The notes below the pieces were generated by a model, which was not told where the DNA came from, did not search any database, and worked only from the letters and a program-made list of their open reading frames with translations. From NCBI GenBank assembly GCA_010909165.1, contig MU008194.1, forward strand, positions 434,001 to 498,000: a DNA stretch of 64,000 bases, in the 5' to 3' direction. The stretch's first letter is position 1. Every line of letters begins with the position of its first letter. This DNA comes from Anthoceros angustus. Taxonomy: Eukaryota; Plantae; Anthocerotophyta. Made by a program: the position numbers and the translations under genes. Of the stretch, positions 16,428 to 58,510 are shown one piece after another.

Positions 16428-18806
16428 ATGGCGGGGCCGAAGCGGAGGCGTGGAGTATTCCGTGCCGGAGAAGCCCTAACTTTCATGTTCTTACTGCAAG
16501 CGTATGTATGGCTTAGTGTAGGGGAGTGTAAGGCGGTTTTAGTGGGAGGGGACTACCACTGGCGGGCTCCCCCGGAGAATGACACTCACTTCTACCAGGA
16601 GTGGGCCGATTCTGTCTCACCGCTTCACGTTGGGGATGCCATAAGTAAGCTATCTTCAGAGCCTGTCTCTAGGTGATGGTATGGGATAAGTGCTTGTATG
16701 TTGTTTTCGTTCTGTTGGATCTCGGAATGTTGTTGTTTGTTTCCCCTTTGTGTGATTTGAAGCTTCGTGCTGTTCGTCCTGACATCACTGCTGCTCGCAT
16801 TCGTGTGGCAGTCTTCGAACATGGCGCACCTTATTCGGTGTATCTGGTCGATGAGGCAGATTTCAGGAACTGCGACAGCAACCATGCCTCTGAGGTTTCG
16901 CCTGGAGGAAATACGTCTGTGGTGCTCAACACTTCTGGCCTTGCCTATGTTATCGATGGCTTGTTCTGCTCCCAGGGCATGTTATTCAGTTTGCTTGTGA
17001 GTCCACTTCCAAGCGTCGCGGCTGGATCCTTCCAACCCCCCAAGGCGCATAAAATGAATATCCGTGAACCACAATATAAGTCCGAGACTGTGATTGGAGG
17101 TATGGAGGAGTTTGTAGATTGTGCAGCTGAACTTTGCTGCTTCTTTGCGCAATCGTTTGTTTGATTTGTTGCTTCATTCTGCTGAACATGGCCATTTTTT
17201 GGGCAATGCAGTGATCATGGGAGCTTTCGGAGCCACCTTTTTGTGTGCCCTTTTTTGCTTTATCCACCGCACCTTTTACAGAAATCGGGGTGAGCTTCCT
17301 GATTTGTCTGACATGTATAGAATGAGAGAGTCTACTCCCCCTCCGGTTACAGTTAAATCAGCTGCCGTTAGTGCCACACAAACAGACCACAGTTCGGGGG
17401 TGCCAGCCTCACGTAGCATTAGGGCATGTACAGGGATCGAAGGTCCAAGTAATCACTCTCTCTCTTTTTCCATGGGAGGTGCAAAAGTGTTTTCTTTACA
17501 GGAAGTCAAGGAGGCAACCAGAGAATTTGCAAAGGATTTCTGTATAGGGGAAGGGCAATATGGAAAGGTTTACAGGGGTAGATTGTACATGAAGGAGTTA
17601 CATGCCGTGAGAGAGGTTGCTGTGAAGCGGCCAAAATTTAGGAAAGCCTGGAAAGACTTGGATCTAATCAACTTTGAGCTGAGTGTCATGGGGAATGTTA
17701 GTTCTAGATATCTGGTTCAGTTGCTTGGTTATTGCTATGAGCATGAAGGGGCTCCTCCTGTGTTGGTATATGAGCTCGTCTCAAGAGGATCCTTGTCGGA
17801 CCATCTGTTTGGTTACAGACTCGGGAGCTTTGCAAGCAGTACAACTGAGTTGTCCCAGGGGACAAAATTCCTAGGTGTGTGGGGGCTAATCATTTCGTAA
17901 TGCTTTTTTTCTCCTGTAATCAGGTTTCTTGAGGTCGTCCTCCTGAACGGAAAATGCTGATTCAATGTTCCCATCTTTTTTCAGATTGGAACAGAAGACT
18001 GCAGATTGCAATTGGGACCGCTAAAGGCTTGGAGTACTTGCATACGTCTAGTCATCCTGCCCTGCTGATTCACAGGGCTGTGAATCCGGGGAATATCTTA
18101 TTAGATGATGAGTTCCAACCAAAAGTGGCAGATTTTGGATATTCTGGATCGATTCCTGGCCAGCAATCAAGCGATAGAGGCATGTAATTTCAGGCATGGA
18201 GGAGGTAGAAGTGTGAGAGGATCACCGTATTGATGACTAATAATCTGATGCTCTGAATCCTTTGTATGCTGCAGGGTCCAATGGCTTTGTTGACCCCTAC
18301 GTTGAAGGCCCATTTACTGATAGGTCAGATGTTTTTAGTTTTGGAGTTGTTCTGATGGCACTGGTTACGTCCAAGAGGCCATACGAACAACCATGGTGTA
18401 CAAGTGACGGCAACTTTGTGGATCCCTTCTTTACGTTCATCAAGAATGACACGGTGGAGCGCATTTTGGATCCTGAACTCACTCGACGAGAGGGTAATGA
18501 GGGAATCGAGGAGATGAAGACAGTTGCCAAGGTTGGCAGACCAAATTTCTTAATTTGTCTTCGCTTTGTGCAGACCTAGGCGATGGGTGCCGTTTGCAAG
18601 ATTGTGATTGAATTACATCTAAGTTCGTGAACTGAAATCGCTGAACGTGTATGGTGTAGATTGCCGCTTCATGTATGATGAGAAGAACAGAGCATAGACC
18701 TTCAACGAAGGATTTAGTATTTTCGCTGGAACAAATTCAAACTGAACGACAACGGAGAGTGTCCAGCCTTGATCCTACGACTGATGGTAAAATTGACTTA
18801 GTGTGA
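16428..18806 (+). CDS. Receptor-like pseudokinase with a single phytocyanin/ENODL-like ectodomain (gene A)
   Basis: Signal peptide (LTFMFLLQAYVWLSVGEC). Phytocyanin domain VGGDYHW..FYQEWADS..LHVGDAI|IFEH..SVYLVDEADFRNC..LAYVIDGLFCSQGMLFSLLV. TM VIGVIMGAFGATFLCALFCFI. Kinase GEGQYGKVYRG, VAVK, HRAVNPGN, DFG, SDVFSFGVVL. About six exons, stop at 18804-18806. Confidence 0.88.
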
Positions 18807-19406
18807 CCAACGAGCTCCACGTGGAGTACCGCTCTTCAAATCTCTGTTTCAACCAAATATGGACAGAGACACAACACGTTGTGCCTCTGGAAGCAGGTTA
18901 AGCAACTGCGGAGGGCAAGGCAACGTGCGGAGACATGCCTCCAACACGATGAGGAGCACATCATCCAGTTGTACAGTCCTACACTTGGGAGACATACCGC
19001 CCAACACTGTAGAAAGCGGAGTAATTAGGGGTACACCTCTGAGTGCGGGGATCTTCACTCCAAAACTCTGGGGGAAGCAGAGTATCCGAATGTGCAGCTA
19101 CATACTGAGTATCAACTCAGTTGGGGCACATGAGCTTGGTGTCTACGCAAAACCAATTTTGTTTTGTACTTCTTATTGGTGTTGCACACCTTGTAAGGTC
19201 TCTTTGATCGGGCCAATTAGCGCAGGTGAAAAAAGCAGGACAATATTATGTTGCCTGTAAAGACGCTTCCTTCTTTGAGCTTCTGTGTCATTTCGTCAGT
19301 GCCCTCATAAGCATTACCCAAAGCTTTCTCAGTATGCTCACCTGGCCAGAGACTTAGTCAGCGTTTGTTAGTCTAGTCGGTCCGAAAATCATTTGATCGA
19401 ACCACT

Positions 19407-20966
<1,560 letters not shown>

Positions 20967-22501
20967 ATGCAGTGGTGCACTATAGAGTCCGATCCTGGTA
21001 AATGAGAGGAGGTCTCTGCCTTTCTGGTTGTTCCGTTTCATTCTGTGCTGCTGTGTGGCTCACTTTTGCCACCGGAGGATTGCAGGCGTCTTCACGGAGC
21101 TCATCCAGCAGATGGGGGTGAAAGGAGTCCAGGTGAGGCGATGTGATGAGCGCTGGTGCAAGTGTTATGTGTCTGGTCTATCCGGTCTTCAATCACAGAA
21201 GTACCTAGCATTTTTTTCCATGCGCCCAATTGCGCATCAGACTCAGGCCTGAATTACAGGGGTATACTTGGTGCCAGTCTGCTCATGACTTCTTGCCGTG
21301 TGCTAGGTTGATGAGCTCTACAGCCTCGATCTGGACTCGCTTGAAGCGCTGAGGTGAAGAAGAGCTGAGCTGAGCTGAATTCTGTGAATGATAAAGTGTT
21401 GTTGTGAGATGAAATTAACGTTTTGGCTTTCTGGTAAGCAGACCCGTGTACGGGCTTATTTTCCTGTTCAAATGGCGACATGGAGAAACGGATAGCCAAC
21501 CCGTTTTGAAGGAGTATAACCCAAACCTGTTCTTCGCAAGTCAGGTGTGAAATCGGAGTTGATGTGGATGAAGGTGTCCGGACTGACTGGATTGCTGTTA
21601 TCTTGAGGGTGAAGTGCTGTGTGGTCGAGCAGTCTTGCCGGAAGTGTGTCTGGCTTTTTTCGTTTTTGGGCTGCCTCGAGGATCCTTACCCAGTTGTTGC
21701 TCATGCCTTGTGTTCCAGGTCATAAATAATGCTTGTGCAACGCAGGCCATTCTGTCCATTCTTATGAACAGGCCCGAGATTGACATTGGACCTGAGTTGT
21801 CTATGTTGAAGGAGTTTACGAGAGAGTTCCCCCCGGATTTGAAGGGACTCGCCATAAACAACTCGGACGCCATCCGAACGGCTCACAATAGTTTTGCAAG
21901 GCCCGAGCCGTTTGTCCCCGAGGAGCAAAAGGCAGCAGACAAAGACGATGATGTTTATCACTTCATCAGCTACCTCCCCGTGGATGGTGTGTTGTATGAG
22001 CTGGACGGGCTGAAGGAAGGACCTATCAGTTTAGGCTCCTGTGGCGACGATGGACCTGACAGCAAGACGTGGTTGAAAATGGTGCAACCAGTGATTCAGA
22101 AAAGGATAGAGAAGTATGCCAAAAGTGAGATTAGGTTCAACTTGATGGCAGTTATCAAGAACAGGAAGGATGTCTATCTGGCAGAGATTGCAGAGCTGGA
22201 GAGAACAAGGGAGCTGTTGCTGAAGACTCAGCAGGCCAGCAAGGCAAATGAGTCTAAGGATGTGGCTGTCCCGGGTGTGTCATCCATGGTATACGTTACC
22301 CATGCACTGGCAGAGGTGGAGTCCAGAATAGAGCACTTAAATGAGAGGATCATGGTGGAAGACGAGAAGTTCAGGAAGTGGAGGACAGAGAACATCAGGC
22401 GGAAGCATAACTACATTCCGTTTCTGTACAATTTCGTGAAACTTTTGGCAGAAAAGAAGCAACTCAAACCTCTCCTCGAGAAAGCCAGACAGAAGACCTA
22501 A
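20967..22501 (+). CDS. UCH2: Ubiquitin C-terminal hydrolase, UCH37/UCHL5 type (plant UCH1/2); five exons
   Basis: [11 protein letters not shown]|[15 protein letters not shown]|VDELYSLD..|[16 protein letters not shown]|[43 protein letters not shown]. Confidence 0.95.
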
Positions 22502-23282: not shown

Positions 23283-25939
23283 ATGGTGAGTCCGTCATCG
23301 ACAAAATGCGTCGTGCTTCTTTTCAATGTAACCATTTTCGCTGGTACCCTTTTCTCCTCCAATGCGCAAGGCAGCAGCGTTGTGCACGCTGTTGGAGGCC
23401 ACCTTGGATGGACGGTGCTTGCTGGCAGGGGCTTCTACCAGGATTGGGTCGACAGCAGCAGCATCTTCGTAGGTGACATCCTCTGTAAGTAGCTTTAGAG
23501 TCTAAAGCTTCAATGAGATGGAAACTGCCTCTCGCTCAACCATATAGCCTTTACACATCCCAGGCTTGGATGCATATGTTGAGAAATGTGCAGTGAACAG
23601 GGCTGACCCGAGGTGCCAATTCCATGCCACAGATTTCGGGTATAACCCTACTCGCCACAGTGTTCTGCAAGTTGAAGAAAAGAATTACAACTCCTGTACC
23701 ATCTCAGAACCACTCCTGTTCCTGTGGTCCGGGCACGACGGAGTGCGCCTGTGGGATTCTGCGTACTTCTTTGTCAGTGGCACTCCCGGGGACTGTGAGG
23801 CTGGCCTGAAATTCTTCATTCGTCCTCTTTCAAGGAGAGGGCAGCAGGGCAGGGTACGCTCTTCGAGCAGAGGTAAGTATATCTGCCACCTCGAAGGATT
23901 GTTACGACACATGTGACGGCCTTCAGCTATTGCGCTAACCCACTAAAACCTCGGGTGTTGCATGCTTAGCCTCGCTTCGAATTGAAGCCAGGATAGGCAT
24001 GAAAACCCAACTTGCCACGCCTCCTCTGCAGTCAATGAATCCTCCAAAAGGCCCGAGCCCACCTCCAAATCCTGGTAAACATGTATAAGTACATATCTAG
24101 AGGCATCAGCATCCAAGTTCAAGCTCGTGCATGACTTGCCATATCCATGGTTTATGTGCGATTTTAGGGACTCCATCGTTTGCCGTGGTGGTCGTCGTAT
24201 TGATGGTGGCAGGACGTGAGTGTTCGCAGAACTCCTAACTCTTAATCCAGCGATGCAGCCATCAAAGAAAGCAAGAATCTGACTGATGTGCATTGCTTGT
24301 TGAAGTTGGAATTGCAGTGATGGTAGGGGGTGCCGTTGCTATGTTAATCCTGAACGCCCGAACACACAAGATCGTCAGAAGGTTGAAAGCTTCCAGTGCG
24401 GAGACCTCCAGGAACCCAGGCTCCCCGGACGGTCGTCTAAGACGGCACTACAAGCTCACCTCCTGCCGCATGTACACTCTGAAGGAACTGGAGGCGGCAA
24501 CCGACAATTTCTGTAAGACCTTGCTGCTGGGCCAAGGAGGGCATGGAACTGTGTACAAGGGGAAGCTGGAGGGCCAGGATGTGGCAGTGAAGAAGAGCAT
24601 TTGCCCTGTGGTGCACCCTGATACCACGCGCGTGAAGCCGGCAGGTGTGAGTAATCATGCGCATCCCCCGGCTCCCAGTCCCGATACGCTCAACGACTTG
24701 GCCCAAAGTCAGTGCTTGAACGAGATCACTCTCCTCTCCAAGGTCCATCACCGCAACCTGGTGCGTCTGCTGGGATATTGTCTTGCTGGGGCAGACTCTC
24801 TCTTGGTGTACGAGTATGTCCCCAACGGCACACTGAAGGACCATCTCCATGGATCACGACGTAAGGTCGGGATTCCCAGTGTCAAGGCAAGTGTTCCTTT
24901 CCCTCTCCCAAATTACGGATGTACAAAGTTCTGTACCATGGCTGCTCTTCTACTCTTGAGGGACATTGTTGTTGCTGTTGTTCCGTTTCTTCCGCCAAGA
25001 CTCTTGAATCCTTGGGCTACCACAGCTGTGCATGAACTGGGGTGGGGTGGAGTGCGGGGGATGTGCAGAGAGTGTGGCTGGACTGGGAGAAGCGGCTGCA
25101 AATCGCAACCGAGACAGCAGAGGCCCTGCACTACCTCCACTTCTCGGTGGCCCCTCCCGTGTACCACCGGGACGTGAAGTCCTCCAACATTCTCCTGGAC
25201 GCGGACATGAAAGTGAAGCTGTCTGATTTTGGGCTCTCCAAGCTGGGGCAGCTGGAGGCCGGGGAAGGCCGGGTGTCACCGTTCGGGGCCAAGGGCACGC
25301 CAGGGTACATCGACCCTGAGTACTCCAGCGGGAGGCAGGAGGTAAGGCTCCCACTCAGCTCTTGTCGCTCGCGCTTGGATGAATCTACGCACCGGAGACT
25401 GAGAGCGTACGGCGTGTGGGCAATGCAAATGGGCTGGCAGGCTACGGATAAGAGCGATGTGTACAGCTTCGGCGTGGTGCTCCTGGAGCTCATAACGGGC
25501 AAGAAGCCGGTGGACAACGCGCACGCCCCGGCCTTCTACGACCCGAATCTGGCCTCCCGCTCGATCCCCTTCATCGAAAATGAGCACACCAACAAGATCA
25601 TCGACCCGGACCTTGGAGCTGTGAATGACGTTCAGATGATGGCGTCCATCAAGAGGACGGCGAGGGTCGCGCTTGCCTGCTTGGCTGCCGAGGGGCTGAG
25701 CAGGTGAAGTCGTTTGCTGCCAATGAGTCCAGTCTGACTGCGGAGTCTAAGGTGTGGATGCAGAGGTTTAAAATCTGAAGGTGGGCTGTTGCAGGCCTTC
25801 CATGGACGAAGTGCTGGAAGAGCTGCGGGGCATTAAGAGTTCCAACCGTCCACCTCTCAGACGCTTCCAGGTCCTCGGGAGTCAAGTTCAGGACGGTGAT
25901 CGCCAGCCTTCTCCCTTGAGCACGATGAGTAACGCCTAG
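23283..25939 (+). CDS. Receptor-like kinase (RD) with a single phytocyanin/ENODL-like ectodomain and a Pro-rich stalk (gene B)
   Basis: Signal peptide MVSPSSTKCVVLLFNVTIFAGTLFSSNAQG. Domain VGGHLGW..FYQDWVDSSSIFVGDIL|YFGYNPTRHSVLQVEEKNYNSC..YFFVSGTPGDCEAGLKF. Stalk exon PPKGPSPPPNP. TM FAVVVVVLMVAG|LGIAVMVGGAVAMLIL. Kinase GQGGHGTVYKG, VAVKK, HRDVKSSN, DFG, GTPGYIDPE, SDVYSFGV. Confidence 0.9.
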
Positions 25940-26398: not shown

Positions 26399-26678
26399 TC
26401 AGTCATGACCAATGGGTAAGGAGGCCGTGACCAAATCAATCATGACCAATGGATAAGGAGGCCATGACCACATCAGTCATGACCAACGGGTAAGGAGGCC
26501 GTGACCTAATGAGTCATTACCAACGAGTAAGGAGGTCAGTCATGACCAACGGGTAAGGAGGCCGTGACCTAATTAGTCATGACCAACGGGTAAGGAGGCC
26601 GTGACCTAATTAGTCATGACCAACGAGTAAGGAGGTTGTGACTAAATCAGTCATGACCAACAGGTAAGGAGGCCATGA
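26399..26678. repeat. Minisatellite, ~8 copies of a 37-bp unit (one truncated)
   Basis: Consensus tcagtcatgaccaacgggtaaggaggccgtgacc(t/a)aa. No unique spacers. Confidence 0.92.
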
Positions 26679-31963: not shown

Positions 31964-32665
31964 ATGGTGTACATAGATTTATGGGACGACTTCGAGGAGC
32001 GCGCCATCTTGTTGTTCCGTGCCGATCCTAATGCTGTATCCTACGCTGTTTCCAATTCACGTAGAAAAGGGAATTTGTGCCAAGCAGGCGAACCTGTCGT
32101 GTTGAATGTGTGGTTTGGCCATGTCTCAGCTGTCAGAAACCAGGAGATGGTTGAGATCTTAACAAGAAAGCAGACTCGGTACGTTATGAAGTATCGCCAT
32201 TGCGATGGGAAGCTGGTGCTGAAGGTCACTGACGATCGGGTGGTATGGCACTTTCAGCTGCACTTCTCTACTCCTTTTTGCTAGCAGCTGTTAGGTGGGG
32301 TTAGGGTTGAGCTGTGACGAGGGGTTGGTGTACCTCTCTGTAGGAGCTTTAGTGGGTCACAATTTGAATTCTGGGTTGCAGTGTTTGAAGTTCAAGACAG
32401 ATCAGGCTCAAGATGTCAGGAAGATGGAAAAGCTGAACAACATTTTCTTCACAATGATGGCACGTGGGCCTGATGGTAAGTTCGATTCTTCCCTCAGCAG
32501 CCTGAATACCTATTGTACAGCCGGGTGATGTCGTACCGGCCTCAATACCTAGTGAAAGTCGGCTGATGTTGTCGTTGGCATGTTTCAGCTGTTGTGCCGG
32601 AGGAAGTGCCTAAGGAGCAAGTACAACAGCAAGCCTCGAAGAAAGGCCGCGGCAGACGACAATGA
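31964..32665 (+). CDS. SRP9: Signal recognition particle 9 kDa protein; four exons
   Basis: MVYIDLWDDFEERAILLFRADP|TRYVMKYRHCDGKLVLKVTDDRV|CLKFKTDQAQDVRKMEKLNNIFFTMMARGPD|..QQASKKGRGRRQ*. Confidence 0.95.
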
Positions 32666-34259
32666 TTTGTCGAGGGATAGCACTGCCACATTGGCAGCCA
32701 TTTTGGTCTGGCCTGCGACCACCTACAGCTCTGCCCTACGCATGTATGGCCCAAATCTCTCCACTCGGAAATTGACGGTGGTGTGGTACTCCCAACTCAG
32801 ACAGTGAGGAGACCAGCAGATTGTTCTAAGACTTTCTTCCTACCAGGGCACCCGACATCGTGAAGGCGATTTGAATCAAGTTGTAGAGACGCGGCGCAAG
32901 CTGGTCAGCTAGGTAGATGTTGTTTTCATGAAACTTACATCCTAGGGTGGAAGTCCACGCTGGGAAAGAAGTGCTTCGGGAGCGTCCATAGCCGGATCCT
33001 ACAATGTCGAGATCCATTTTTGCAACCATGTTCCACAACGGGTTCCATCCCGCGAACAAGTAGCTCGCAGGTCGATAGTTCTTCTCTTAAATAACTAATT
33101 AGCGTGACAGCACAAGATTCCTGAAAGATTGTTCAATTAAATTGGAATTATCTGTGAAAGCCGTCAGGTCCATCCCAGTCCTACCCCCAAGAATCATTGT
33201 GTATCCCTTCGGAACGATATACATAGGTATACTGAGCGACATCCTCCCTGCGAGGGGCTTGGCTCCCGCAGCTGTTGCCTTTGCTGGAAGTCCGACTCTT
33301 TGCCTGCTTGGGAGGTTTCTAGAAGGTTGCGAGATATAACCCATATTAAAGCCCAAAACTGTGTCGTCTCCGTAGCTGTATTAGAACTGCCGCCTGTGTC
33401 TGGAGGTTGAGTTAGCCGCGCGCTCAGAGCACAACCATTTTCGCTTCTGCTTGCACTGAAGAGAACCTTGCGTGGGACACAATTCACTGCACACTCCACA
33501 TTTCAGGGTGCGCAATCCAGGGCTCCGTAGAATAACATCAAATTGGACGTTTTGTTTACCAACATGCGGAGTGCGGGGTAGAAGGGTGTGCATTGCTATC
33601 TTCTTGATACGTGGTTATAGCAGGTGCTTCAGAAAAACCGCTCTCTGCTGCGTCCTATGGGTGGGAGGTCTGCAGGGTTGCGTGGCCGCCGGGCGCCGGC
33701 ATCTCGCGAGCTCTGCAGAAATCTCCGTGGGTAGAAGGAAGGCACCTGGGGTAATGGAACATTGCATCATGATATTCCCTCGGAACCGCTATCTTGTTCC
33801 GGATGACACCCAGCTGTTGGGTGCCACCTCCTTCTGGTTTTAGACCTGATTCACAAACAGCTCGACGGTGGCCATGAGGTCCAGAGGGACTGACATGATT
33901 CCGTGCCATTGCAGGCTTCCACTTGTGCCAGCGTCCGTCTCCAGAAGGGAGCTTGGAGGGGCCGGGTCCACCTCAATTCATGACGGGGAGTTAATAGGTG
34001 CTATAAAGATCAGTATCTTCGGAATTTTAGTCAGCACCTCATACAGTGTGTGCAGACTCCTCCACTGTAGCTCCCCACAAGCCTCGTCGTAACAACAAAT
34101 GTCTCGAAACTCTTTCTTCAGCCTCAGATGAGGACTCACAATTGGGGGAGCTTGGAAATGCATGAAAATGAATCTCGCTGGAAATGTCTTGTTCTTTGAA
34201 ATCCACCAAGCCTTGGCTTCCTGCGCTGCTCAAGCTGATAGACCCCCTGGTGACAAACG

Positions 34260-37044
34260 TTATCTGGGTCTCATAAGCTCTGTAGCACTTCCCGAACTCG
34301 AGCTGGAAGTTGCCTTGGTTGTTGATGTTGACCCCGACTCTTCCAACAGCATACCGTAGGCTTGCATCTCAAGTGTCCTGTTTTCACTGTCGATGACATC
34401 AGCCTTGCTGTAAAATTCCTCAGCCTTCAGCTTGGATCCCTTGATCCTTTGCAGCATTTCCACGACTTCACTCATCGATGGTCTTGAAGCCCTCGACGCC
34501 ACCAGGCACGCCACCGCAACCTGCCACCACAAACTGTTAGTCTCCATTCTGCTCTGAACTGATCTGAAGGGCTCCTCACACAGCTGTAATCAATGACTGA
34601 CTCACCTGTGCAACTGCCTCAACTGCGTGGAGCTCCTCTCGTGAGAGAGTGGACGACATATGCGAGTCAATGATTTCACGGACCCTCCCACTCTTGATCA
34701 AGGGGATTGAGGACACAGCAAGGTTCTGCTCCGCAGCTGCTTTGGAAAGATCAATCGGCTTCTTGGACGTGATCAACTCCAGGAGCACAACCCCAAAGCT
34801 GTACACGTCTGTTTTATCGGTAAGCTGGAAGTTGTGGAAATATTCCGGATCCAGATAGCCAGGAGTTCCCTTCACAACTGTGGACACATGTGTGGCCTCC
34901 AAATCCACCAGCTTAGAAAGCCCGAAATCCGCAACTTTGCCGTTGAAGTTATCGTCTAATAGGATATTGGCAGACTTCACATCACGATGGAAGATTGGTG
35001 GTGTTGCCTGAACATGCAAGTACTTGAGTGCCTCAGCCGTTTGAAGAGCAACCCTGAACCTTGTGCTCCAATCAAGCCTGGTGTTGAAGCCCTTGTGTGC
35101 TATGGATAGGTGATCCTGCAAAGTGCCATTGGGTATGAACTCATATACCAGAAGCGGAATGTCCAACTCGATGCAGCACCCCAAAAGCTTGACAAGATTC
35201 CTGTTGTTCACTTGCGAGAGGATGGCCACCTCGTTTACAAACGACTCCACATCGCTGGCATGCTTTGCCATTTTAATGGCCACGGTTCTACCGTCATCCA
35301 GAGTCCCTTTATACACAGTGCCAAACCCTCCACTCCCAACCTGGTTGTCTGCAGAGAACCTTTCTGTTGCACGCTCCAGCTCAGCATAGGTGAACATGGT
35401 GCATGCTGCAAGTCGAGCGGCATTCTCCTTCAAAATGCCACTGATGGCAGCCGAGGCTTGACCAGACCTCCCGAACGCACCACTGATCACAACATTTCGT
35501 TCTTGATACTTCCCCCTGGGTTTAGACCCATACTGCCGCCGATAGTACAGAAACCCTATAAGAGCTAGCACAACAATCGAGATGATGACGGCAGGCACCG
35601 CCACCGCTGCAGCCACCACAAGTTGCAAATTGCTGAACTTCAGTTGCCAGCGGTTACAGTACTCCACACAAGAAGAAACCTTGACAGCAAGCAACATCGG
35701 TTTACCTGCCACCGGGAACTTCTTCTTCTCCTCTTGCTTCCCCCCACCGGTGTTCGAGCCGGCTCCCCCTGCAAAGCCCAATCCGCCTTCAGAGAGGGTG
35801 TTCATAACGAAGCAACTGCGGATCGGAAGACCGTTCCAAGCCATGGTCAACAATGCTCCAGGAAACCTACCCACTTGCACACTCAGCTTCATGTTGCCAG
35901 CAGCACAGTTATCCGCAATTCCATCAATGAAATAGTACACCCCATTATCTGGTCCAAGAGGCACGCCATTGCCCGGGATGTTGTTCACACCCAGCGGTCT
36001 GGAGGGCACCGTGCAGCTGTTGAAATCATCTTGGTTTACCCGCACCACGTTGTGTTTGTCCTTAGTGAAGCTGAAGACTTCATGGAATGCAATAAAAAAC
36101 AGTTCACCAACGAGTCAGACAAACAAGCACAAATCTCACAGCACCAGTACCAGCACCAGCACCAGCACCAGCACCAGCACCAGCACCAGCACCAGCACCA
36201 GCACCAGCACCAGCACCAGGAGCAACAAACAACTTGGTGTTGGGCAACAACAAATCCAACCATACACACCAAGCACAGATCCGGCCTGAAAAGGGAATCC
36301 CTTGAACGCATTCGTGTAGAAGTTGGCATCCGTTTGAGGCTCCCAGATAATCTCAATCTGGAAGGCCTGGTTGGGCGTCCCGTCTTGCGTGGGATCGGAA
36401 TCCGGAGCGGGAGCGGGAGCAGGACCAGGATTACTGGTGAACTGTGGAGGGGGAGGAGAAGCCAGACCAGACCCAGGAGAGGGAGCGGTCTGCCCCGGAG
36501 GAGGCGGAGCTGGAGTACTGGAATCCCCAGGTTGGACGGTGACGGAAAACGCCATCCCCTGCTGGCAGTCTGAACTAATGTTGGTAGTGGTGATCCCGGT
36601 GCTGGTGAAGAAGTACGTGCCCGCTTGCACCAAATACAGCAAGGTGGCGCCTCCGGTGAAAAAGGCACCCGGGTCTGCGACCGAGCAGCTCGCCAGGTCA
36701 TCCAGTGACCAAAGCTGCGTCACGTCATGGCTGGTATCGTACACGAACACTGCGGCCATGGCAACAGCTGCTCAGATACGGACAATGAAACGATGCAACA
36801 ATCACGGGCTGCAACCAGAAACCTGAACACATCTCATACATAGAGAGTCGTTGACGTAGAGCGTCAATCCGTCGGCCCACTTCTGGTAGAAGTCCGGGTC
36901 TTGGTGAGGAGACCAATCAAACGTGGAGCCTGGAATATCCCCGACATCGTACTGCAGCTGGGCTTCAGCCACGGGAGCGGCAGCCAGCATGAGACCCAGC
37001 AGCGAGAGTGCGAGTGCGATCCAGGCGATCCTTGAGGAGTCCAT
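34260..37044 (-). CDS. Receptor-like kinase with two tandem phytocyanin/ENODL-like domains, a Pro/Ala-rich linker and a WAK-like RD kinase (gene C)
   Basis: Signal peptide MDSSRIAWIALALSLLGLMLAAAPVAEA. Domain 1: YDVG..DWSP..FYQKWADG..VNDSL|LFVYDTSHDV..C..TYFFTS..DCQQGMAFSVTV. Linker PAPPPPG..PAPAPAP. Domain 2: WEP..FYTNAF..FQAGSVL|VFSFTKDKHNVVRVNQDDFNSC..YYFIDGIADNCAAGNMKLSVQV. TM AAAVAVPAVIISIVVLALIGFLYY. Kinase [44 protein letters not shown]. Confidence 0.92.
36139..36218. repeat. (CAGCAC)n microsatellite in an intron of gene C
   Basis: About 13 hexamer units. It is shorter in the paralogous intron of gene D (~54302-54339). Confidence 0.95.
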
Positions 37045-38539
37045 CTCTCTGGCGACGCCGCGCCTCCCCGAGCTGAAACGTATCACCGATCTGCACCCTC
37101 GAGGCTGCGATTCTGGGCGATGGGCGTCTGAATGCGGTCTCGCAGACGCGGTCGGCAAGGGAGACCAGCATATCGCGTTTCACCATGAGGACGGCAGATG
37201 CGCGTCGGGACACCATGTTTAGGCTGGCAGTCAGGGGTCCTGCAGCGAAACTTCGGCCGGCATGGGGGCCCGGCCGCTAAACCAATTCGGCTCTGCCGAC
37301 CCATACAGAGACGTTCTCCATTCGAGGGGCTTGGGTCCCGCTGTAGACATGGGTCCTGTCGACAGACCAGGCTCTCACAACAGTACATCGCCCCTCAGTT
37401 TGTCGGTTCGGGAGAAGGTGGAAGCAGCATTGGCCACGGGCATTACCAAGAGCTTGAGATTTTGAAGCACGGACAGAAGGATGCTATGCTATGGGCGCAG
37501 CTTGCTGCCTGTTGTGACAAGTCCGAGGATCTGCACATCGGAAGTTTGCACAAGGGCGAAAGATATAACCCATATTTCGCACCAAGACTGTGTCACATCT
37601 GAGGCTGTACCTGAGCTGTGGCCTGCGCATGTGAGAGAATCGGCCGAGTGTTCAGCGCAATGCGAACTATTGTTTCGCCTTTTACTAAAGATTACCGTGC
37701 GCGGGATACAAACCAGCGGCATACTCCCTCGTTTTGGGCTGAGCTCTCCACAGCTCCACGAAGAAAAATACATGGGATAACGTCCACGATCATGGATACC
37801 AGGTTCGGATCTCCGGTTCTCGGCGATGTGGGATCCGTCAGGTGCCTCTGCTGGCGAGAAACCTGTGACAGAGAGGCTGCAGGGACGAGCCACCGGCACT
37901 TCCAGGGCTTGGGGAAATATCCGGGAGGGAGCTCCTGTGGAAGGTCCCTCAACACGTCTCATGATTGGAACACCGTAACATGAGAATCCCCAGGGAATCC
38001 CCAAGCCCGCTGTGCTGTTCCGGATGACACCCACACATTGCCGGAGCCAAAGCTGGAATTGCCTCGGTTTGTTCATCCCGATTGCTCGTCATGACCAGAC
38101 AACTGAAGTGAAGAAACGGATACATGTCTCCGGAGTATTACCTGCCCCCGGAAGGCTTTCCCGGAGAGGAGAAACTCTTTCTACTGCCGTCTTCTAAGCA
38201 TTAAGTCTGACGCATGCACATTCATGCACATTCTGTTACCGTCCGACTCATGACAGGTGTGACCAGACAAAGCCTCTGGAATAGTTTCTTGTTGTTGGGG
38301 AAGGAGATAGGTGCTAAGGTCTCCATATGCTCTGTGACCCTCGACAAACAGCTTCTTGTCTGATCATATCTGTTGTTGGTTGATTTCACTCTATCACAGT
38401 ACACAGCGTTTGGGCACGAAAGATGGGTCTGTCTAGCAAGACTGGAGCGGAAGATCGGTATCAATGAGCAATGAGCAATGAGCAATGAGCAACCCAATGA
38501 CTCTCCGTTGGAGATGATACTAAAAGCAATTAGAATTGC

Positions 38540-41700: not shown

Positions 41701-42293
41701 TTCTCCTAGGTTAGTCATATCGAACTTAGAAAGAAGAATCACGATACCAGTGAGTTCTTTGAATAGAAAGTTGTCATTAACATGAGTGAGGATCAAGAAA
41801 TCCGCCCCATCCACGGGATATAAACACTTGTGTCCGTGATCAAGGCTAGTGAAGCCTAGTTCCATCAAAAGCTTATGGAATACCTCATACCATGCACGAG
41901 ATGCCTGTTGAGATCATAAAGTGTCTTGAGCAGCTTGCACACTTTGTCCTTGTCAATGACAAAACCCTCCGGCTCATGTAGATATCTCCGTATCATTATT
42001 CGTTTTGACATCCAGTAGTGTACAAGAAGGTTATAATGGACAGCTAGGGCTAAGGATCCTTACAGAGGTGGACTTGTGACTCGGGGCAAAGGTTTCGTTG
42101 AAGTGAGTCCGAGAATCGTCATGGCCCTTGGCAACAAGGTGGGCCTTGTATCTACCATCAGTATTCAATTTTTTCTTAAAGACCCACTTGCATGCAACTG
42201 GTTTTCTACCTGGAGGGAGATCTACAAGCTTCCAAGTCTTGTTCTGAATGAGAGAATTGTATTCAGAGTCTATAGCAGCTTGCCAAAAAGAGG

Positions 42294-47340: not shown

Positions 47341-50300
47341 CAACAATCTTCGTATCAAACCCGGGCAGGACAAAAGGATCGGAGACGAGGCCAGATCTGG
47401 ATAAGGTACCAGGCGCCTAGCGAAACAGAAGGAAAGGATTCCAAAGGCCACCTGAGCATCCTCCAGCAAAGGGAGGTCCTCAATATGGGAGAGGTTCTCT
47501 GCAAGGGCCTTGTCTAGGAAGCTCCCAATGAAGTCGGGGAACCAAGGGACCCCAAGAATCCATGAGACCAAGAGTGAGCAATCTCCCAGGAGCTAGTGGC
47601 GGGATCCCCGGCCGGGGACAGATGCACTTGGACATCTTGACCTTCAAGCCCTGGCAGCTCGGAGAATATCTCAAAGGCCTCCTTGACTTTGTCCCGGGCA
47701 GGGATGTGAGAATCGTGCAGCGAAGGGAGACACGGTCAGCGGAGGCGGCCTAGGCAGAGCCCTATAGTGAGCAATAGCGAAGAGCACCGCCTAGCGGGTT
47801 GCCTTGCACAGTACACATGGCCGATTCAAGGCAGGCAGAAACACGAAGAGACGTTCTTGTCTTTGGTAGTAGAGGTTGGAGGACCTCCGTAGAAGCACCG
47901 GACAAAGGGTATAAGACTCCCGGGGCGCCTTGACATCCCTAAGCTCCTCAAAGATGGCGCTCAGGAAATGGTATTGAAGGCGTTCTCGACATCCACTGTA
48001 AGACTACCCAATCCGGGTGGGTATCAAGGCAAGCTTTCACCCCTAGCATCACGGACTTCGGCCAATTCAATGCCAAATTGAAGGGGTTGAAGTCTTCTTT
48101 GGAGAAGGGAGGCGACGCTGCGGGCGATAGTGCGGTGAGTAGCCGCATGAAGGCCTCCCAACCGCGAGTGGGCGACGCCCGAGAAAGGCGCTTGTCCATA
48201 GCGACAAGCCTACTAATGCAAACGGTGAAATCCGGTGAGGCATCTCTCCACGAGCCACCGTGACCCGAGAAAAGAGCTGGAAAGCCGATGGATGGGAAAA
48301 GGCGAGGGTTGTGGAGAGCTAGAGCAAAAGCCGCCGGTCGAGGAGAAGGGATCCTCAGGACATAGTCGGATATGTCGGGGAATGGCATCCTTAGGTGGCG
48401 GATGGAGGGCACGAGGGCGCAATTGTCTCTTGAGCGGGGCCGGAGGGGCGGGTCGAAGAGCCCTAGCGGTGTGAGCATATTCACCACTTTGGCCAAGCAA
48501 CTTGCGGCGTAGGTTTGTTGCATTACCGGTACTGTTCCAAGCTGGCGGCGATTCCGGGACTTGGCGGCCGCCTGACCTCCTCTGAAGAGCCGCCCGATCG
48601 CCCGGCCACGCCAAAGGCGGCTAGCAACTTCACGGTGCCGCCCCCTCCTGGTGCAGAAGACACCATCGGGAGAAGAAGGAGGAGGCACCAAGCTAACTCA
48701 TCCGGGGATCGGCGCAAGGCGATCTAGGGAAGGCGAAATGTCGACGGGCATCATCGTGAAGGTGCCGAGGAAGCTCCCAATGAAGTCGGGGAACCAAGGG
48801 ACCCCAAGAATCCATGAGACCAAGAGTGAGCAATCTCCCAGGAGCTAGTGGCGGGATCCCGGCCGGGGACAGATGCACTTGGACATCTTGACCTTCAAGC
48901 CCTGGCAGCTCGGAGAATATCTCAAAGGCCTCCTTGACTTTGTCCCAGGCAGGGATGTGAGAATCGTGCAGCGAAGGGAGACACGGTCAGCGGAGGCGGC
49001 CTAGGCAGCCTATAGTGAGCAATAGCGAAGAGCACCGCCTAGCGGGTTGCCTTACACAGTACACATGGCCGATTCAAGGCAGGCAGAAACACGAAGAGGC
49101 GTTCTTGTCTTTGGTAGTAGAGGTTGGAGGACCTCCGTAGAAACCCGGACAAAGGGTATAAGACTCCCGGGGCGCCTTGACATCCTAAGCTCCTCAAAGA
49201 TGGCGCTCAAAATGGTATTGAAGGCGTTCTCGACATCCACTGTAAGACTACCCAATCCGGGTGGGTATCAAAAAGCTTTCACCCCTAGCATCACGGACTT
49301 CGGCCAATTCAATGCCAAATTGAAGGGGTTGAAGTCTTCTTTGGAGAAGGGAGGCGACGCTGCGGGCGATAGTGCGGTGAGTAGCCGCATGAAGGCCCGA
49401 GTGGGCGCCGAGCAGGCGAGCTTGTCCATAGCGACAAGCCTACTAATGCAAACGGTGAAATCCGGTGAGGCATCTCTCCACGAGCCACCGTGACCCGAGA
49501 AAAGAGCTGAAGCCGATGGATGGGAAAAGGCGAGGGTTGTGGAGAGGCTAGAGCAAAAGCCGGTCCGAGAGAAGGATCCTCAGGACATAGTCGGATATGT
49601 CGGGGAATGGCATCCTTAGGTGGCGGATGGAGGGCACGGAGGCAGCAATTGTCTCTTGAGCGGGGCCGGAGGGGCGGGTCGAAGAGCCCTAGCGGTGTGA
49701 GCATATTCACCAGCAAGCAACTTGCGGCGTAGGTTTGTTGCATTACCGGTACTGTTCCAAGCTGGCGGCGATTCGCGGGACTTGGCGACGCTGACCTCCT
49801 CTGAAGAGCCCGATCGCCCGGCAAGGCGGCTAGCAACTTCACGGTGCCCAGCCCCCCTAGTGCAGAAGACACCATCGGGGAGAAGGAGGAGGCTAACTCA
49901 TCCGGGGATCGAGGCGCAAGGCGATCTAGGGAAGGCGAAATGTCGACGGGCATCATCGTGAAGGTGAGAAACTGCGGAAGATGCGGACATGGAAGCGGGT
50001 TTCGAACATCCCAAGGATGTGATCCGGTGACTCAACCATTCCCGGAAGAAAGAGGCACCACAAGGAGAAACTCATGCGCGGAGGCGGGCGGGAGGAGGAG
50101 GTCGCGGCGTGCACTTGGGCAGCCTGTAGTCCGGTCGAAATCTTTATGCATGTGCGAGGTGAGTTTTCACCCCTTGGCCTTGATGAGTTGAGCATGATCG
50201 ACAAGGAGTGTCCTTGACTGTCATGGAGGGTGTGGATCGCCCCATTGGATGGGGGCGAAAAGGGCACGCGGTTGAAGGGTGTGGCGAGGAGAGGTGCAGG

Positions 50301-50800: not shown

Positions 50801-51106
50801 AGTACAATACGATTGTTCAGACAATGGGAGACGTGTTTCGCAGACGTCCTGCATCGCGGTGTCTGAAATCTACAAAGCTCCTTGAACTATTTAGTGGTTC
50901 TGAGTCCTGCCATCACAGCAATCTGGAACTTGGAGGGAGGAGATCCTTTCTGCTTCGGGACTTCTACAAATTACGTCCGCCACACGCACATTCCCACTAC
51001 CGTTCGACTCAAAGGTTCAAGCTGGAACCAGCCTCATGAATAGTTTCTTTTTGTCGGGGAAGGAGATATCTGTTGATGACATGATTCATACTTTCATGAT
51101 TTAGCA

Positions 51107-54100
51107 TGGGAAAGAAGTGCATCGGGGGCGTGCATAGCCGGATCCTACAATGTCGAGATCCATTTTTGCAACCATGTTCCACAACGGATTCCATCCCGCG
51201 AACATGGAGCTCGCAGGTCGATAGTTCTTCTCTTAAATAACTCATCAGTGTGAGAGCACAAGATTACTGGAAGGTTGTGCAATTAAATTGCAATTATCTG
51301 TGAAAGCCGTCACTTCCATCCCAGTCCCCCAGAATCATCGTGTATCCCTTCGGGACGATATACATAGGTATACTGAGCGACATCCTCCCCTGCGAGGGGC
51401 TTGGCTCCCGCTGCTGTTGCCTTTGCTGGAAGTCCGACTCTTTGCCTGCTTGGGAGGTTTCTAGAAGGTTGCGAGATATAACCCATATAAAAGCCCAAAA
51501 CTGTTTCGTCTCCGTAGCTGTATTAGACCTGCGGCTTACCACAGGATGTGCGGTAAACACGTGTTCAGCGCGCAGCCATCTTCAATTCTTCTTTTTAAGG
51601 AAAAGAATCTTGTGCGGGACATAAATGCGGCACGCTCCACTTTTCAGGGTGCGCACTCCAGGGCTTCGTAAAATACCATCAAATTGGGCATTTTGTCTAC
51701 CAAAATGCGGAGTGCGTGGTACAAGGATGACCATTGCCATCTTCTTGATACGTTTGTAATAGCAGGTGCTTCAGAAAAACAGCTCTCTGCTGCGTCCAAT
51801 GGGTGGGAGGTCTGCAGGGATGCGTGGCCGCCAGGCTCCGGCATCTCGCGAGCTTTGCAGAAATCTCCGTGGGTAGAAGGAAGGCGCCTGGGGTCGATCC
51901 TCGAAACATCGCATGAATGGAACATTGCATCATGATATTCCCTCGGGACCGCTATCTTGCTCCGGATGACACCCAGCTGTTGGGTGCCACCTCCTTCTTT
52001 TTTTAGACCTGCTTCACAAACAGCTCGACGGTGGCCATGAGGTCCAGACTCCAGAGGGGCTGACATGATTCCGTGCCATTGCAGGCTTCCACTTGTGTCA
52101 GCGTCCGTCTCCAGAAGGGAGCTTGGAGGAGCCGGGTCCACCTCAATTCATGACGGGGAGTTAATAGGTGCTATAAAGATCAGTATCTTCGGAATACTAG
52201 TCAGCACCTCATACAGCGCGTGCAGACTCCTCCACTGTAGCCCCACAGGCCTCGTCGTAACAACAAATGTCTCGAAACTGTTTCTTCAGCCTCAGATGAG
52301 GACTCACAATTGGGAGAGCATGAAAATGGATCTCGCTGGGAATGTCTTGTTCTTTGAAATCCACCAAGCCTTGGCTTCCTCCGCTGCTCAAGCTGATAGA
52401 TCCCCCTGGTGACAAACGTTATCTGGGTCTCATAAGCTCTGTTGCACTTCCCGAACCCGAGCTGGAAGTTCCCTTGGTTGTTGATGTTGACCCCGACTCT
52501 CCCAACAGCATACCGTAGGCTTGCATCTCAAGTATCCTGTTTTCACTGTCGATAACATCAGCCTTGCTGTAAAATTCCTCAGCCTTCAGCTTGGATCCCT
52601 TGATCCTTTGCAGCATTTCCACGACTTCACTCATCGATGGTCTTGAAGCCCTCGACGACACCAGGCACGCCACCGCAACCTGCCACCACAAACTGTTAGT
52701 CTCCATTCTGCTCTGAACTGATCTGAGGGCTCCTCACAGCTGTAATCAATGACTGACTCACCTGTGCAACTGCCTCAACTGCTTGGAGCTCCTGTCGTGA
52801 GAGAGTGGACGACATATGCGAGTCAATGATTTCACGGACCCTCCCACTCTTGATCAAGGGGATTGAGGACACAGCAAGGTTCTGCTCCGCAGCTGCTTTG
52901 GAAAGATCAATCGGCTTCTTGGACGTGATCAACTCCAGGAGCACAACCCCAAAGCTGTACACATCTGTTTTGTCGGTGAGCTGGAAGTTGTGGAAATATT
53001 CCGGATCCAGATAGCCAGGAGTTCCCTTCACAACTGTGAACACATGTGTGGCCTCCAAATCCACCAGCTTAGAAAGCCCGAAGTCCGCAACTTTGCCGTT
53101 GAAGTTATCGTCTAATAGGATATTGGCAGACTTCACATCACGATGGAAGATTGGTGGTGTTGCCTGAACATGCAAGTACTTGAGTGCCTCAGCCGTTTGA
53201 AGAGCAATCCTGAACCTTGTGCTCCAATCAAGCCTGGTGTTGAAGCCCTTGTGTGCTATGGATAGGTGATCCTGCAAAGTGCCATTGGGTATGAACTCAT
53301 ATACCAGAAGCGGACTGTCCAACTCGATGCAGCACCCCAAAAGCTTGACAAGATTCCTGTTGTTCACTTGCGAGAGAATGGCCACCTCGTTTACAAACGA
53401 CTCCACGTCACTGCCATGCTTTGCCATTTTAATGGCCACGGTTCTGCCATCATCCAGAGTCCCTTTATACACAGTGCCAAACCCTCCACTCCCAACCTGG
53501 TTGTCTGCAGAGAACTTTTCTGTTGCACGCTCCAGCTCAGCGTAGGAGAACATGGTGCATGCTGCGAGTCGAGCCGCATTCCCCGTCAAAATGCCACCGA
53601 TGGCAGCCGAGGCTTGACCAGACCTCCCGAACCCACCACTGGTCACAACATTTCGTTCTTGATACCTCCCCCTGGGTTTAGACCCATACTGCCGCCGATA
53701 GTACCGAAACCCTGTAAGAGCTAGCACAACAATCGAGATGATGACGGCAGGCACCGCCACCGCTGCAGCCACCACAAGTTACAAATTGCTGAACTTCAGT
53801 TGCCAGCGCTCACAGTACTCCACACCAGAAGAAACCTTGACAGCAAGCAACATCGGTGTACCTGCCACCGGGAACTTCTTCTCCTCCTCTTGCTTCCCCC
53901 CACCGGTGTTCAAGCCGGCTCCCCCTGCAAAGCCCAATTTAAAATCCGCCTTCAGCGAGGGTGTACATAACCAAGCAACTGCGGATCGGAAGACCGTTCC
54001 AAGCCATGGTCAACAATGCTCCAGGAAACCTACCCACTTGCACACTCAGCTTCATGTTGCCAGCAGCACAGTTATCCGCAATTCCATCAATGAAATAGTA

Positions 54101-55475
54101 CACCCCATTATCTGGTCCAAGAGGCACGCCATTGCCCGGGATGTTGTTCACAACCAGCGGTCTGGAGGGCACCGTGCAGCTGTTGAAATCATCTTGGTTT
54201 ACCCCCACCACGTTGTGTTGGTCCTTAATAAAGCTGAAGACTTCATGGAATGCAATAAAAAACAGTTCACCAACGCGTCAGACAAACAAGCACAAGGCTC
54301 ACAGCACCAGCACCAGCACCGCCACCGCCACCAGCACCAGGAGCAACAGACAACTTGCGCTTGTTGGGCAACAACAAATCCAACCATACATACCAAGCAC
54401 AGATCCGGCCTGAAAAGGGAATCCCTTGAACGCATTCGTGTAGAAGTTGGCATCCGTCTGAGGCTCCCAGTTGATGTCGATCTTGAAGGCCTGGTTGGGC
54501 GTCCCGTCTTGCGTGGGACCGGAATCCGGAGCGGGAGCGGGAGCGAGAACGGGAGGGAGAGCGGGACCAGAACCAAGACCGGTGAACCGGGTTTGGGGAG
54601 GAGAAGCCCCACCAGACTCGGGAGAGGGAGCGCTCTGCCCCGGAGGAGGCGGAGCCGGAGCCGGAGCCGGAGTACTGGAATCCCCAGGCTGGACGGTGAT
54701 GGAAAACGCCATCCCCTGCTGGCAGTCTGAACTAATGTCGGTAGTGGTGATCCCGGTGCTGGTGAAGACGTACGTGCCCGCTTGCACCAAATACAGCAAG
54801 GTGGCGCCTCCGGTGAAAAAGGCACCCGGGTCTGCGACCGAGCAGCTGGCCAGGTCATCCAGTGACCAAAGCTGCGTCACGTCATGGCTGTTGGTATCGT
54901 ACACGAATACTGCGGCCATGGCAACAGCTGCTCAAATACGGACAATGAAACGATGCAACAATCACGGGCTGCAACCAGAAACCTGAACACATCTCATACA
55001 CAGAGAGTCGTTGGCGTAGAGCGTCAATCCGTTGGCCCACGTCTGGTAGAAATCCGGGTTTTGGGAAGGAAACCAATTATTAGACGAGGAGCCTGGAATA
55101 CCCCCGACATCGTACTGCAGCTGGGCTTCACCCACGGGAGCGGCAGCCAGCATGAGACCCAGCAGCGACAGTGCGAGTGCGGTCCAGGCGATCCTTGAGG
55201 ATTCCATCTCTCTGGCGAAGCCGCGCCTCCCCGAGCTGAAACGTATCACCGATCGGCACCCTCGAGGCTGCAATTCTGGGCGATGGGCGTCTGAATGCGG
55301 TCTCGCAGACTCGGTCGGCCAGGGAGACCCGCATCTCGCTTTTCACCACGAGCACGGCAAATGCACGTGGGGACATAATGTTTGTTTAGGCTGTCAGTCA
55401 GGGATCCTATACCGAAACTTCGACGGGCATGGGGCTTGGTCGCTAAACCAATCCGGCTCTGCCGACCCATACAGA
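51107..55475. repeat. Segmental duplication, copy 2 (paralogous to 32961-37310)
   Basis: Continuous similarity to copy 1. Confidence 0.92.
52419..55207 (-). CDS. Double-phytocyanin WAK-like receptor kinase (gene D, recent paralog of gene C)
   Basis: MESSRIAWTALALSLLGLMLAAAPVGEA. Same exon structure as gene C. Intact kinase with HRDVKSAN, DFG and GTPGYLDPEY. Confidence 0.9.
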
Positions 55476-55479
55476 GGAT

Positions 55480-56460: not shown

Positions 56461-56489
56461 TCACGGGATGCCAAAACCTTCATCTCCAT

Positions 56490-58510
56490 TATCCTTATCC
56501 TGTGCTCACTGTCAAAAACATCAGCCTTGGTGTAAAACTCCTTCAGCCTTCAGCTTGGAGCCCATGATCCTTTGCAGCCATTTACACGATTTCACTCATC
56601 CACGGCCTTGAGGCTGTTGACGACATCACGCATGCCACCGCAACCTGCCTCCACAAACGGTTAGTCTCGATTCTGCTCTGCACTGATTTGGAGGGCTCCT
56701 CACAGCTGTAATCAATGACTGACTCACCTGTGCGACTGCCTCAACTGCTTGGAGCTCCTCTCGTGAGACCGTGGACGACATATACGAGTCAGTGATTTCA
56801 CGGAGCCTCCCACATATACGAGTCAATGATTTCAAGGACCCTCCCACTCCAGATCAGAGGGGTTGTGCACACAGCAAGGTTCTGCTCCCCAGCCGGATTG
56901 GAAAGGTCAATCGGCTTTCGTGATCAACTCCAGTAGCACAATCCCAAAGCTGTACACATCTGTTTTGTCGGTGAGCTGGAAGTTGTGGAAATATCCCGGA
57001 TCCAGATTGATAGGCAGGAGCTCCCTTCACAACTGTGGACAGATGTATGTGTGGCCTCTAAACCCACCAGCTTAGAAAGCCCCAAGTCCGCAACTTTGCC
57101 GTTGAAGTTATCGTTTAATAGGATATTGGCAGACTTCACATCACGATGAAAGATTGGCGGTGTTGCCTGAACATGCAAGTACGTGAGTGCCTCAGCCGTT
57201 TGAAGAGATTGCAATCCTGAACATTGTGCTCCGAGCAAGCCTGGTGTTGAAGCCCTTATGTGGTATGGATAGGTGATCCTGCAAAGTGCCATTGGGTATG
57301 AACTCCAGGAGCGGAATGTCCAACTCGATGCAGCACCCCAAAAGCTTGACAAGATTCCTGTTGTTCACTTGCGACAGGATGGCCATGCTTTGCCATTTTA
57401 ATGGCCACGGTTCTGCCATCATCCAGAGTCCCTTTATACACAGGGCCAAACCCTTCACTCCCAACCAGGTTGTCTGCAGAGAACCTTTCTGTTACTCGCT
57501 CCAGCTCAGCGTAGGAGAACATGGTGCATGCTGCAAGTCGAGCGGCATTCCCCTTCAAAATGCTACTGATGGCAGCCGAGGCTTGACGAGCCCTCCCGAA
57601 TCTACCACTAGTCACAATATACCGTTCTTGATACCTCCCCTCTGGGTTCAGATCCATACTGCCGCCGATAATACAGAAACCCTACAAGAGCTATCACGAC
57701 GATGGAGATGATGACGGCTGGCACCGCCACCGCTGCAGCCACCAGAACAAATTGCTCAATCTCAGTTGCCGGTACTCAGGGGGGAAAATGTTCCAAGCTG
57801 CGGCTGGCAAAGACATGAGGAGTTTCGTGTAGTAGTATCTGAATGACATTTCCATTCACTCCATCTAATGCTCTGGCCATCCGGGATCGGCGTCCCTTGT
57901 TGCGGAGAACCGCCGGTATCAGCGTGCGGAGAGGGAGCAGCAGCAGGCGGAAGATCACCGGATGAACTGGGGCCAGGAGCGGGATGGAGCGGAGGAGGTG
58001 GAGCTGGAGGACTGGAGTCCCCAGGCTTGACGATGACGTGAAACTGCATTCCCTGCAGGCAGTCTGAACTGCTGTCGTCACTGGGGAGCCCAGTGCTGGT
58101 GAAGTAGCAGATGCCGTTGCCCAGTAAAGTGAGGATCAACCTGTCTTGAAATCAGGGGGAATAGAAAGTCCTGTTCGCGATCAAGCAGTGCCCAAAGTCG
58201 TTGGATGTCCAAAGCTGCGTCACGACATGGGTTTCGGAATCGAACAGGAATATGGCGAGGCAACAGGAAGGGAGGTGCCCATGATCAGATACCATGAAAC
58301 GTTTCAACGAGCATGGGGCCTGCTCATGGTTGTATGAGGCACCTGGACGCTTTTTCAGCGGATGATCGGCGTCCAGGACTCCAGTCCAGCAACAGAGGGC
58401 ACCGCACGGATAGTATGTCTGTATGGTCTGCCACCATGGTGTCACTCGGTCGTCGATTGCCAGTGTGCTGTGCTTGAGGAGAGAAGAAAGGCCATGGCAT
58501 GGCAATGGTA
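56490..58510 (-). pseudogene. Phytocyanin-RLK pseudogene (gene E): one ectodomain, linker, frameshifted kinase
   Basis: LLDWSP.., IFLFDSETHVVTQLWTSNDFGHC, CYFTSTG..SDCLQGMQFHVIVKPGDSSPPAPPPP, AAAVAVP, HRDVKSANILLND..DLG. Deletions and frameshifts relative to C and D. Confidence 0.85.

Follow-up and report, generated by a model that had tools for sequence, protein, structure and literature searches.

Predicted receptor kinases of Anthoceros angustus that carry copper-less phytocyanin modules on WAK-type kinase domains

The ectodomains of receptor-like kinases (RLKs) set what a plant cell can sense. In a 64,000-nucleotide (nt) stretch of the Anthoceros angustus genome (contig MU008194.1, positions 434,001 to 498,000; hereafter the window, to which coordinates refer), we analyzed five loci, A to E, at which a phytocyanin module, in one or two copies, appears to replace the usual GUB_WAK/EGF ectodomain on a kinase of the WAK/WAKL type. 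We propose that A to D are probably type I plasma membrane receptor kinases in which a WAK-type kinase is coupled to a phytocyanin module without copper; this module would bind a partner in the apoplast and thereby promote dimerization of the receptor, with A acting as a non-catalytic partner. Sequence comparison places C and D in an orthogroup common to a liverwort and a fern.

Gene models were built from six-frame translations and local splicing of the window letters; the spliced models were compared locally, and database searches were run exon by exon with A, B, and D. The models of A, B, C, and D are free of stops and encode 567, 607, 738, and 751 amino acids (aa) in 6, 8, 6, and 6 exons, respectively, in agreement with the preliminary description of this DNA, which had counted five loci with A to D in spliceable frames and E degenerate. 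Only A intron 4 departs from the GT-AG rule: it requires GC-AG with the GC donor at 18180, and a GT donor was ruled out there because it produces stops or a frame break. The other introns (82 to 203 nt) all have GT-AG borders. Each protein reads as a signal peptide, one (A and B) or two (C and D) phytocyanin domains, one transmembrane (TM) helix, and a Pelle-type kinase. The TM helix stands out as a single internal Kyte-Doolittle peak per protein (2.3 to 3.0), and the N-terminal hydrophobic peak, by which alone signal peptides were assessed, is pronounced in both C and D, just reaches the threshold of 1.6 in B (1.61), and falls short of it in A.

In gene A (plus strand), exon 1 (16428..16644) encodes the probable signal peptide and the N-terminal part of the phytocyanin domain up to a phase-1 intron, placed where phytocyanins usually have one, and exon 2 (16812..17099), assigned by its Pfam match and by alignment, supplies the rest of the domain, devoid of the His/Cys/His ligands, and a short stalk. 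Exon 3 (17212..17811) carries the TM helix, the juxtamembrane region, and the kinase N-lobe; its end is ambiguous, 17811 and 17874 (donors 17812 and 17875) both being workable. The catalytic loop lies in exon 4 (17985..18179), followed by the GC-AG intron, and the C-lobe and the kinase end with the stop lie in exons 5 (18275..18531) and 6 (18660..18806). Gene B (plus strand) opens with the signal peptide and the N-terminal phytocyanin part (exon 1, 23283..23484), continues with the remaining domain (exon 2, 23633..23872), a Pro-rich stalk (exon 3, 23970-24074), and the first TM half (exon 4, 24168-24215), and ends with the TM end and the kinase (exons 5 to 8, 24318-24865, 25069-25341, 25441-25703, and 25795-25939). 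A Pro-rich insert of ~35 aa follows the VAVK strand of B before helix C (24600-24720, plus strand), where a very short intron is possible. On the minus strand, the local analysis gave C (34260..37044) six exons (37044-36840, 36749-36270, 36077-35871, 35768-35706, 35606-34606, and 34520-34260) that encode, in order, the signal peptide, phytocyanin 1, a linker resembling arabinogalactan proteins (AGPs), phytocyanin 2, the TM helix, and the kinase. Its paralogue D (52419..55207, minus strand), ~90% identical, has the exons 55207-55000, 54909-54394, 54240-54034, 53924-53862, 53762-52762, and 52679-52419.

The Pro-rich stalk earlier ascribed to all of A to D is found in B (20% Pro) and not as such in the others: the stalk of A has 13% Pro and that of C and D 5%, and in C and D the Pro-rich segment (30 to 33% Pro) is instead the linker separating the two phytocyanin domains, with 64 to 67% Pro, Ala, Ser, and Thr and 9 to 11 AP/SP/TP motifs. 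Reading through intron 2 of C and D (36269-36136 and 54393-54299, minus strand) adds a segment rich in Cys, then a run of Leu and Val from a hexamer microsatellite, and ends at a stop. Retention of this intron would yield a kinase-less, membrane-tethered isoform; as the two relatives from SRR33208241 have no such tail, it may be due to chance.

The identity of the ectodomains is supported by several lines of comparison. In exon-wise Pfam scans, the match to Cu_bind_like (PF02298) exceeded the cutoff of 20.8 bits in three exons, A exon 2 (22.6), D exon 3 (29.3), and B exon 2 (40.8), and stayed below it in D exon 2 (15.9), with kinase domain matches downstream in all models scanned. PF02298 was the sole Pfam family on the ectodomain exons, where the scan found none of GUB_WAK_bind, WAK_assoc, EGF, and malectin-like. 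Moreover, mavicyanin 1ws7 came up as a match of B exon 2 (1e-8), and an alignment profile gave strong matches to solved phytocyanins only. A local profile located both halves of each phytocyanin domain in A to D, traces in E, and none elsewhere in the window; since it was built with these domains included, it maps the domains and is not independent proof. The cupredoxin fold was modeled on a fern orthologue and not on the window proteins: the AlphaFold model of the first domain of the Adiantum protein (predicted local distance difference test, 93.9 for the aligned single domain) had mavicyanin, umecyanin, and stellacyanin as its top Foldseek matches (template modeling score of ~0.8). The ectodomain introns of A to D are all in phase 1, which is typical of the phytocyanin domain (PMC4499708), and the disulfide cysteines are retained in every window domain. 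Hence the PF02298 match, the fold of the fern model, the disulfide pair, and the phase-1 intron all identify these modules as phytocyanins, as the preliminary description had supposed.

The copper site tells which kind of phytocyanin they are. A blue-copper site consists of His-Cys-His-Met/Gln, and ENODL proteins are phytocyanin domains without copper ligands (PMC4499708). The corresponding positions read Tyr/Asp/none/Met in A, His/Ser/Asp/Leu in B, His/Ser/Asp/Met in the first domain of C and D, and His/Asp/Asn/Met in their second domain, so that the copper Cys is replaced by Ser or Asp and the second His is lost in all six domains (in B, the Met is lost as well). Thus, the window domains are ENODL-like and not blue-copper, and a blue-copper electron transfer function was rejected. 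They share with ENODLs and phytocyanin-like AGPs the fold, the disulfide, the phase-1 intron, the missing copper site, and an AGP-like Pro-rich region, but ENODLs are stand-alone proteins, secreted or anchored by glycosylphosphatidylinositol, whereas the domains described here stand in frame with a TM helix and a kinase.

A sensor of metal or redox state could still be imagined, in which His, the axial Met, and the Asp at the copper-Cys position of the second domain of C and D would form a weak, non-blue site that switches the kinase. Such a site is conceivable, since azurin engineered to C112D retains the ability to form a type-2 copper site (PMC11953277), and metal has been suggested as the signal for Cu_bind_like RLKs in an RLK survey (10.1101/2023.12.21.572927). 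All three residues, His, Asp, and Met, recur in Adiantum and at both SRR33208241 loci as they stand in C and D, and Calypogeia and A share the Asp and the Met. However, the second His is gone from every window domain, the first is also missing in Calypogeia and A, and the Asp, although kept at the Cys position of the second domain in all these relatives, may be structural; we regard this sensor as quite unlikely.

That ectodomain and kinase belong to one gene is strongly, if indirectly, indicated for C and D by their relatives. A search with the TM-kinase open reading frame (ORF) of D led to Calypogeia and Ceratodon proteins with phytocyanin domains, and one with D exon 2 led to a 706-aa Adiantum protein with PF02298 and a kinase. 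C and D align end to end with Adiantum nelumboides MCO5591003.1 (47% over ~690 columns) and with Calypogeia fissa CAM6096038.1 (40% over 671 columns), and all five of their introns coincide with Calypogeia introns in position and phase, a degree of agreement beyond chance. Two contigs from SRR33208241 hold the same parts in the same order, and the Physcomitrium fusion is an uninterrupted 517-aa ORF on Logan contigs of 2.7 kb (2 to 5 kb; 265 index blocks), as a spliced mRNA would look. The fusion of a copper-less, ENODL-like domain to an RLK in seed-free plants, as first proposed from this DNA, is supported by the exon-wise matches to PF02298 and kinase and by the introns shared with Calypogeia. 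For A and B, the reading as single genes would rest on canonical junctions in phase, gaps of ~100 nt, and the last intron of A, which is common to C, D, and Calypogeia in position and phase. The Calypogeia locus (L005, 19743-27280) holds a second phytocyanin-kinase gene in tandem right downstream of the C/D orthologue, and hence is also a cluster.

If each locus instead held two adjacent genes, one for a secreted ENODL and one for a membrane-anchored cytoplasmic kinase, the fusion would be a modeling artifact. A Met at the start of the TM exon in A and B could serve such an arrangement, as could the introns after the ectodomain, where read-through hits a stop, preceded in C and D by a hydrophobic run. 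Against this, the parts lie only ~90 to 110 nt apart, the junctions are canonical and in phase, the liverwort keeps the intron positions, and full-length fusions are annotated in four species besides the single ORF in the moss contigs, which makes separate genes highly improbable.

The kinase domains differ in their catalytic state. B, C, and D possess the Gly loop, the VAIK Lys, the HRD Asp, DFG, and GTxGY, and are by motif intact RD kinases. In A, HRD is changed to HRA, so that the catalytic Asp is gone, and the GTxGY region is degenerate; because of the Ala replacing the HRD Asp and of its long tree branch, A is a probable pseudokinase, and the kinase earlier attributed to all four genes stands intact in three. 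The best matches of the D TM-kinase are WAK/WAKL kinases. Trees of 68 and 36 kinase domains (LG+G4), drawn from a selection of the top matches, placed C and D within the WAK/WAKL radiation and A and B at its base without firm placement. C and D share a clade with the proteins of Adiantum, Calypogeia, and SRR33208241 (Shimodaira-Hasegawa-like approximate likelihood ratio test [SH-aLRT] of 100 and bootstrap of 81 for Adiantum and Calypogeia with C and D). The moss single-domain fusions make up a clade of their own, whose sister group consists of WAK-like kinases of mosses, one of them with EGF repeats (99/97). Monophyly of the phytocyanin-RLKs requires four changes in the free tree. In approximately unbiased (AU) tests, with groups named after the tree had been seen, joining the C/D and moss clades gave a P value of 0.03, the same two clades with A and B added 0.11, and a clade of A, B, and C/D 0.24. 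On these values, uniting the C/D clade with that of the mosses is somewhat disfavored, and the tests reject neither a single origin that includes A and B nor a clade of A, B, and C/D.

The kinase trees also bear on a reading taken from FERONIA, which the preliminary description had put forward as a Rosetta stone: the fusion would be a hard-wired co-receptor, fixing an ENODL14-FERONIA-like pairing in one chain for gamete or cell-cell recognition. In the FERONIA case, the ENODL binds the malectin ectodomain of the receptor, and pollen tubes are absent from seed-free plants. ENODL14/15 of Arabidopsis do interact with FERONIA (PMC6726743), and both systems set an ENODL-type domain, here also without copper ligands, beside an RLK at the cell surface. 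However, FERONIA and ENODL14/15 are two proteins with a malectin-like ectodomain, another kinase subfamily (CrRLK1L), and a pollen-tube context, and the malectin ectodomain that partners the ENODL is absent here. The single CrRLK1L sequence in the tree falls outside the phytocyanin-kinase groups, and a FERONIA-type identity was rejected in favor of WAK/WAKL/LRK10L-like kinases. Given this kinase placement and the lack of pollen tubes in seed-free plants, the Rosetta-stone link is not supported and survives as an analogy; we consider a hard-wired co-receptor of this kind unlikely.

The resemblance to WAK/WAKL receptors (RLK-Pelle WAK and WAK_LRK10L-1) extends to kinases 45 to 59% identical to that of D, the RD type, the topology, and clustered, fast-turnover genes, but the window proteins have a phytocyanin and lack GUB_WAK_bind, WAK_assoc, and EGF. 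Other counterparts are the Cu_bind_like RLKs with a signal peptide, phytocyanin, TM helix, and WAK-like kinase, that is, MCO5591003.1 and CAM6096038.1 (two domains), KAG0617494.1 and KAG0572943.1 of Ceratodon purpureus, and XP_073395867.1 of Physcomitrium patens (one domain); the Ceratodon domains differ in that they retain some ligands (Cys, Gln).

We propose the following model for the WAK-type receptors with a copper-less phytocyanin module: (i) the ectodomain may have been joined through phase-1 exon shuffling early in land plant history, (ii) its beta-sandwich would offer a binding surface for a wall glycan or glycoprotein, a peptide, or another surface protein, (iii) the linker rich in Pro, Ala, Ser, and Thr could be O-glycosylated and anchor the receptor into the wall, and (iv) on binding, B, C, and D would dimerize and phosphorylate themselves, and A may join them as a partner that lacks catalytic activity. 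In a bolder version, the double-phytocyanin receptor of the C/D clade would be an unnamed ancestral land plant RLK subfamily that bryophytes and ferns have kept and seed plants may have lost. Its second domain would then sense the copper or redox state of the apoplast directly, through a His/Asp/Met non-blue site derived from the blue-copper site, with A as a pseudokinase partner; this we take to be a long shot. Several points weigh against the simpler model of ligand-induced dimerization. The backbone of the kinase tree is not resolved; among the database matches, A and B have no close orthologue and no full-length orthologue with known introns; D may be decaying; and A has a weak signal peptide and needs a GC donor. 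The sequence analysis establishes the gene structure, the domains, and the kinase motifs, from which the model infers a ligand, glycosylation, localization, and a pathway.

The duplication history of C, D, and E is recent. Self-BLAST showed that a 4.4-kb segment carrying C (32961..37310) is duplicated at 51107-55476, where the copy, 91% identical, carries D. In the kinase, nonsynonymous divergence (dN, 0.013) stands against synonymous divergence (dS, 0.050) at a dN/dS of ~0.27; the ectodomain value is higher (small counts). The TM-kinase exon holds six derived changes in D versus four in C; among those in D, Arg replaces Leu where the TM helix ends, and Phe replaces Ser within the activation loop. 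Pseudogene E (56496..58510, minus strand) is a C/D copy damaged by frameshifts and partial deletion: its first phytocyanin domain and linker persist in degenerate form, and nothing in it matches the exons of the second domain. Across the TM-kinase exons, its DNA is 85% identical to that of D, and 9 of the 10 coding indels there are frameshifts. Seven codons at 58956..58976 (minus strand) match the N terminus of D, and the original start of E may thus have been at 58976, upstream of an intervening repeated element (58554-58785). This element is a ~200-nt repeat with copies 69 to 77% identical at 37559-37768, 33314-33395, and 51456-51665, near C and D as well as in the 5' part of E.

The loci had been described as a clustered family, which is accurate for the recent duplicates C, D, and E; A, B, and C/D are pairwise only 26 to 36% identical, and A to D are therefore not a simple tandem array. 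This low identity and the unrelated genes between them indicate that the cluster combines old lineages with a recent C/D/E expansion. By analogy, the duplication and decay of C, D, and E would fit the birth-and-death turnover of wall-surveillance and defense receptors.

It had been left open whether the architecture was unreported. It is in fact old and catalogued: a survey of 528 species lists Cu_bind_like among uncharacterized RLK ectodomains (bioRxiv 10.1101/2023.12.21.572927), moss, liverwort, and fern proteins in GenBank/RefSeq are annotated with PF02298 and kinase, and the architecture is present in 80% of a 65-member cluster in the ESM Atlas. Two RLK overviews make no mention of a phytocyanin ectodomain (PMC13006823, PMC10834447), and no functional study of phytocyanin-RLK fusions turned up when we searched the open literature, so that the earlier view of a little-studied system holds. 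It is not a new class of mechanism, because Pelle kinases have often exchanged their ectodomains and this combination has already been catalogued. Nevertheless, an ectodomain conserved with its introns from a liverwort to the window, and present in a fern, would represent a sensing route several hundred million years old that is missing from the textbook list of RLK ectodomains. As binding would be wired to a kinase readout, the fusion offers a direct route to ask what copper-less ENODL domains bind, and Physcomitrium is a transformable test system that already carries it.

As nuclear DNA of a plant, the window is compact, with a GC content of 39 to 58% and introns of ~100 nt. Between A and B, two housekeeping genes stand head to head, one for a DIM1-like rRNA adenine dimethylase (19407-20612, minus strand) and one for a UCH37-like (UCH-family) deubiquitinase (20970-22501, plus strand). 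Read by eye, a multi-exon Sec7/BIG-like ARF-GEF occupies 1-6000 (minus strand) and a galactosyltransferase-like gene 62114-63801 (minus strand); SRP9 lies at 31964-32284 (plus strand), and 60475-61611 (minus strand) encodes a protein that has a long N-terminal region besides its NifU domain. C and D are separated by a degenerate Copia-type retrotransposon (39850-47571, minus strand) with gag, integrase, and RNase H-like remains and an internal 1-kb tandem duplication (40186-42125), and element-like sequence at 47516-49966 contains a further tandem duplication of 1.25 kb, 93% identical.

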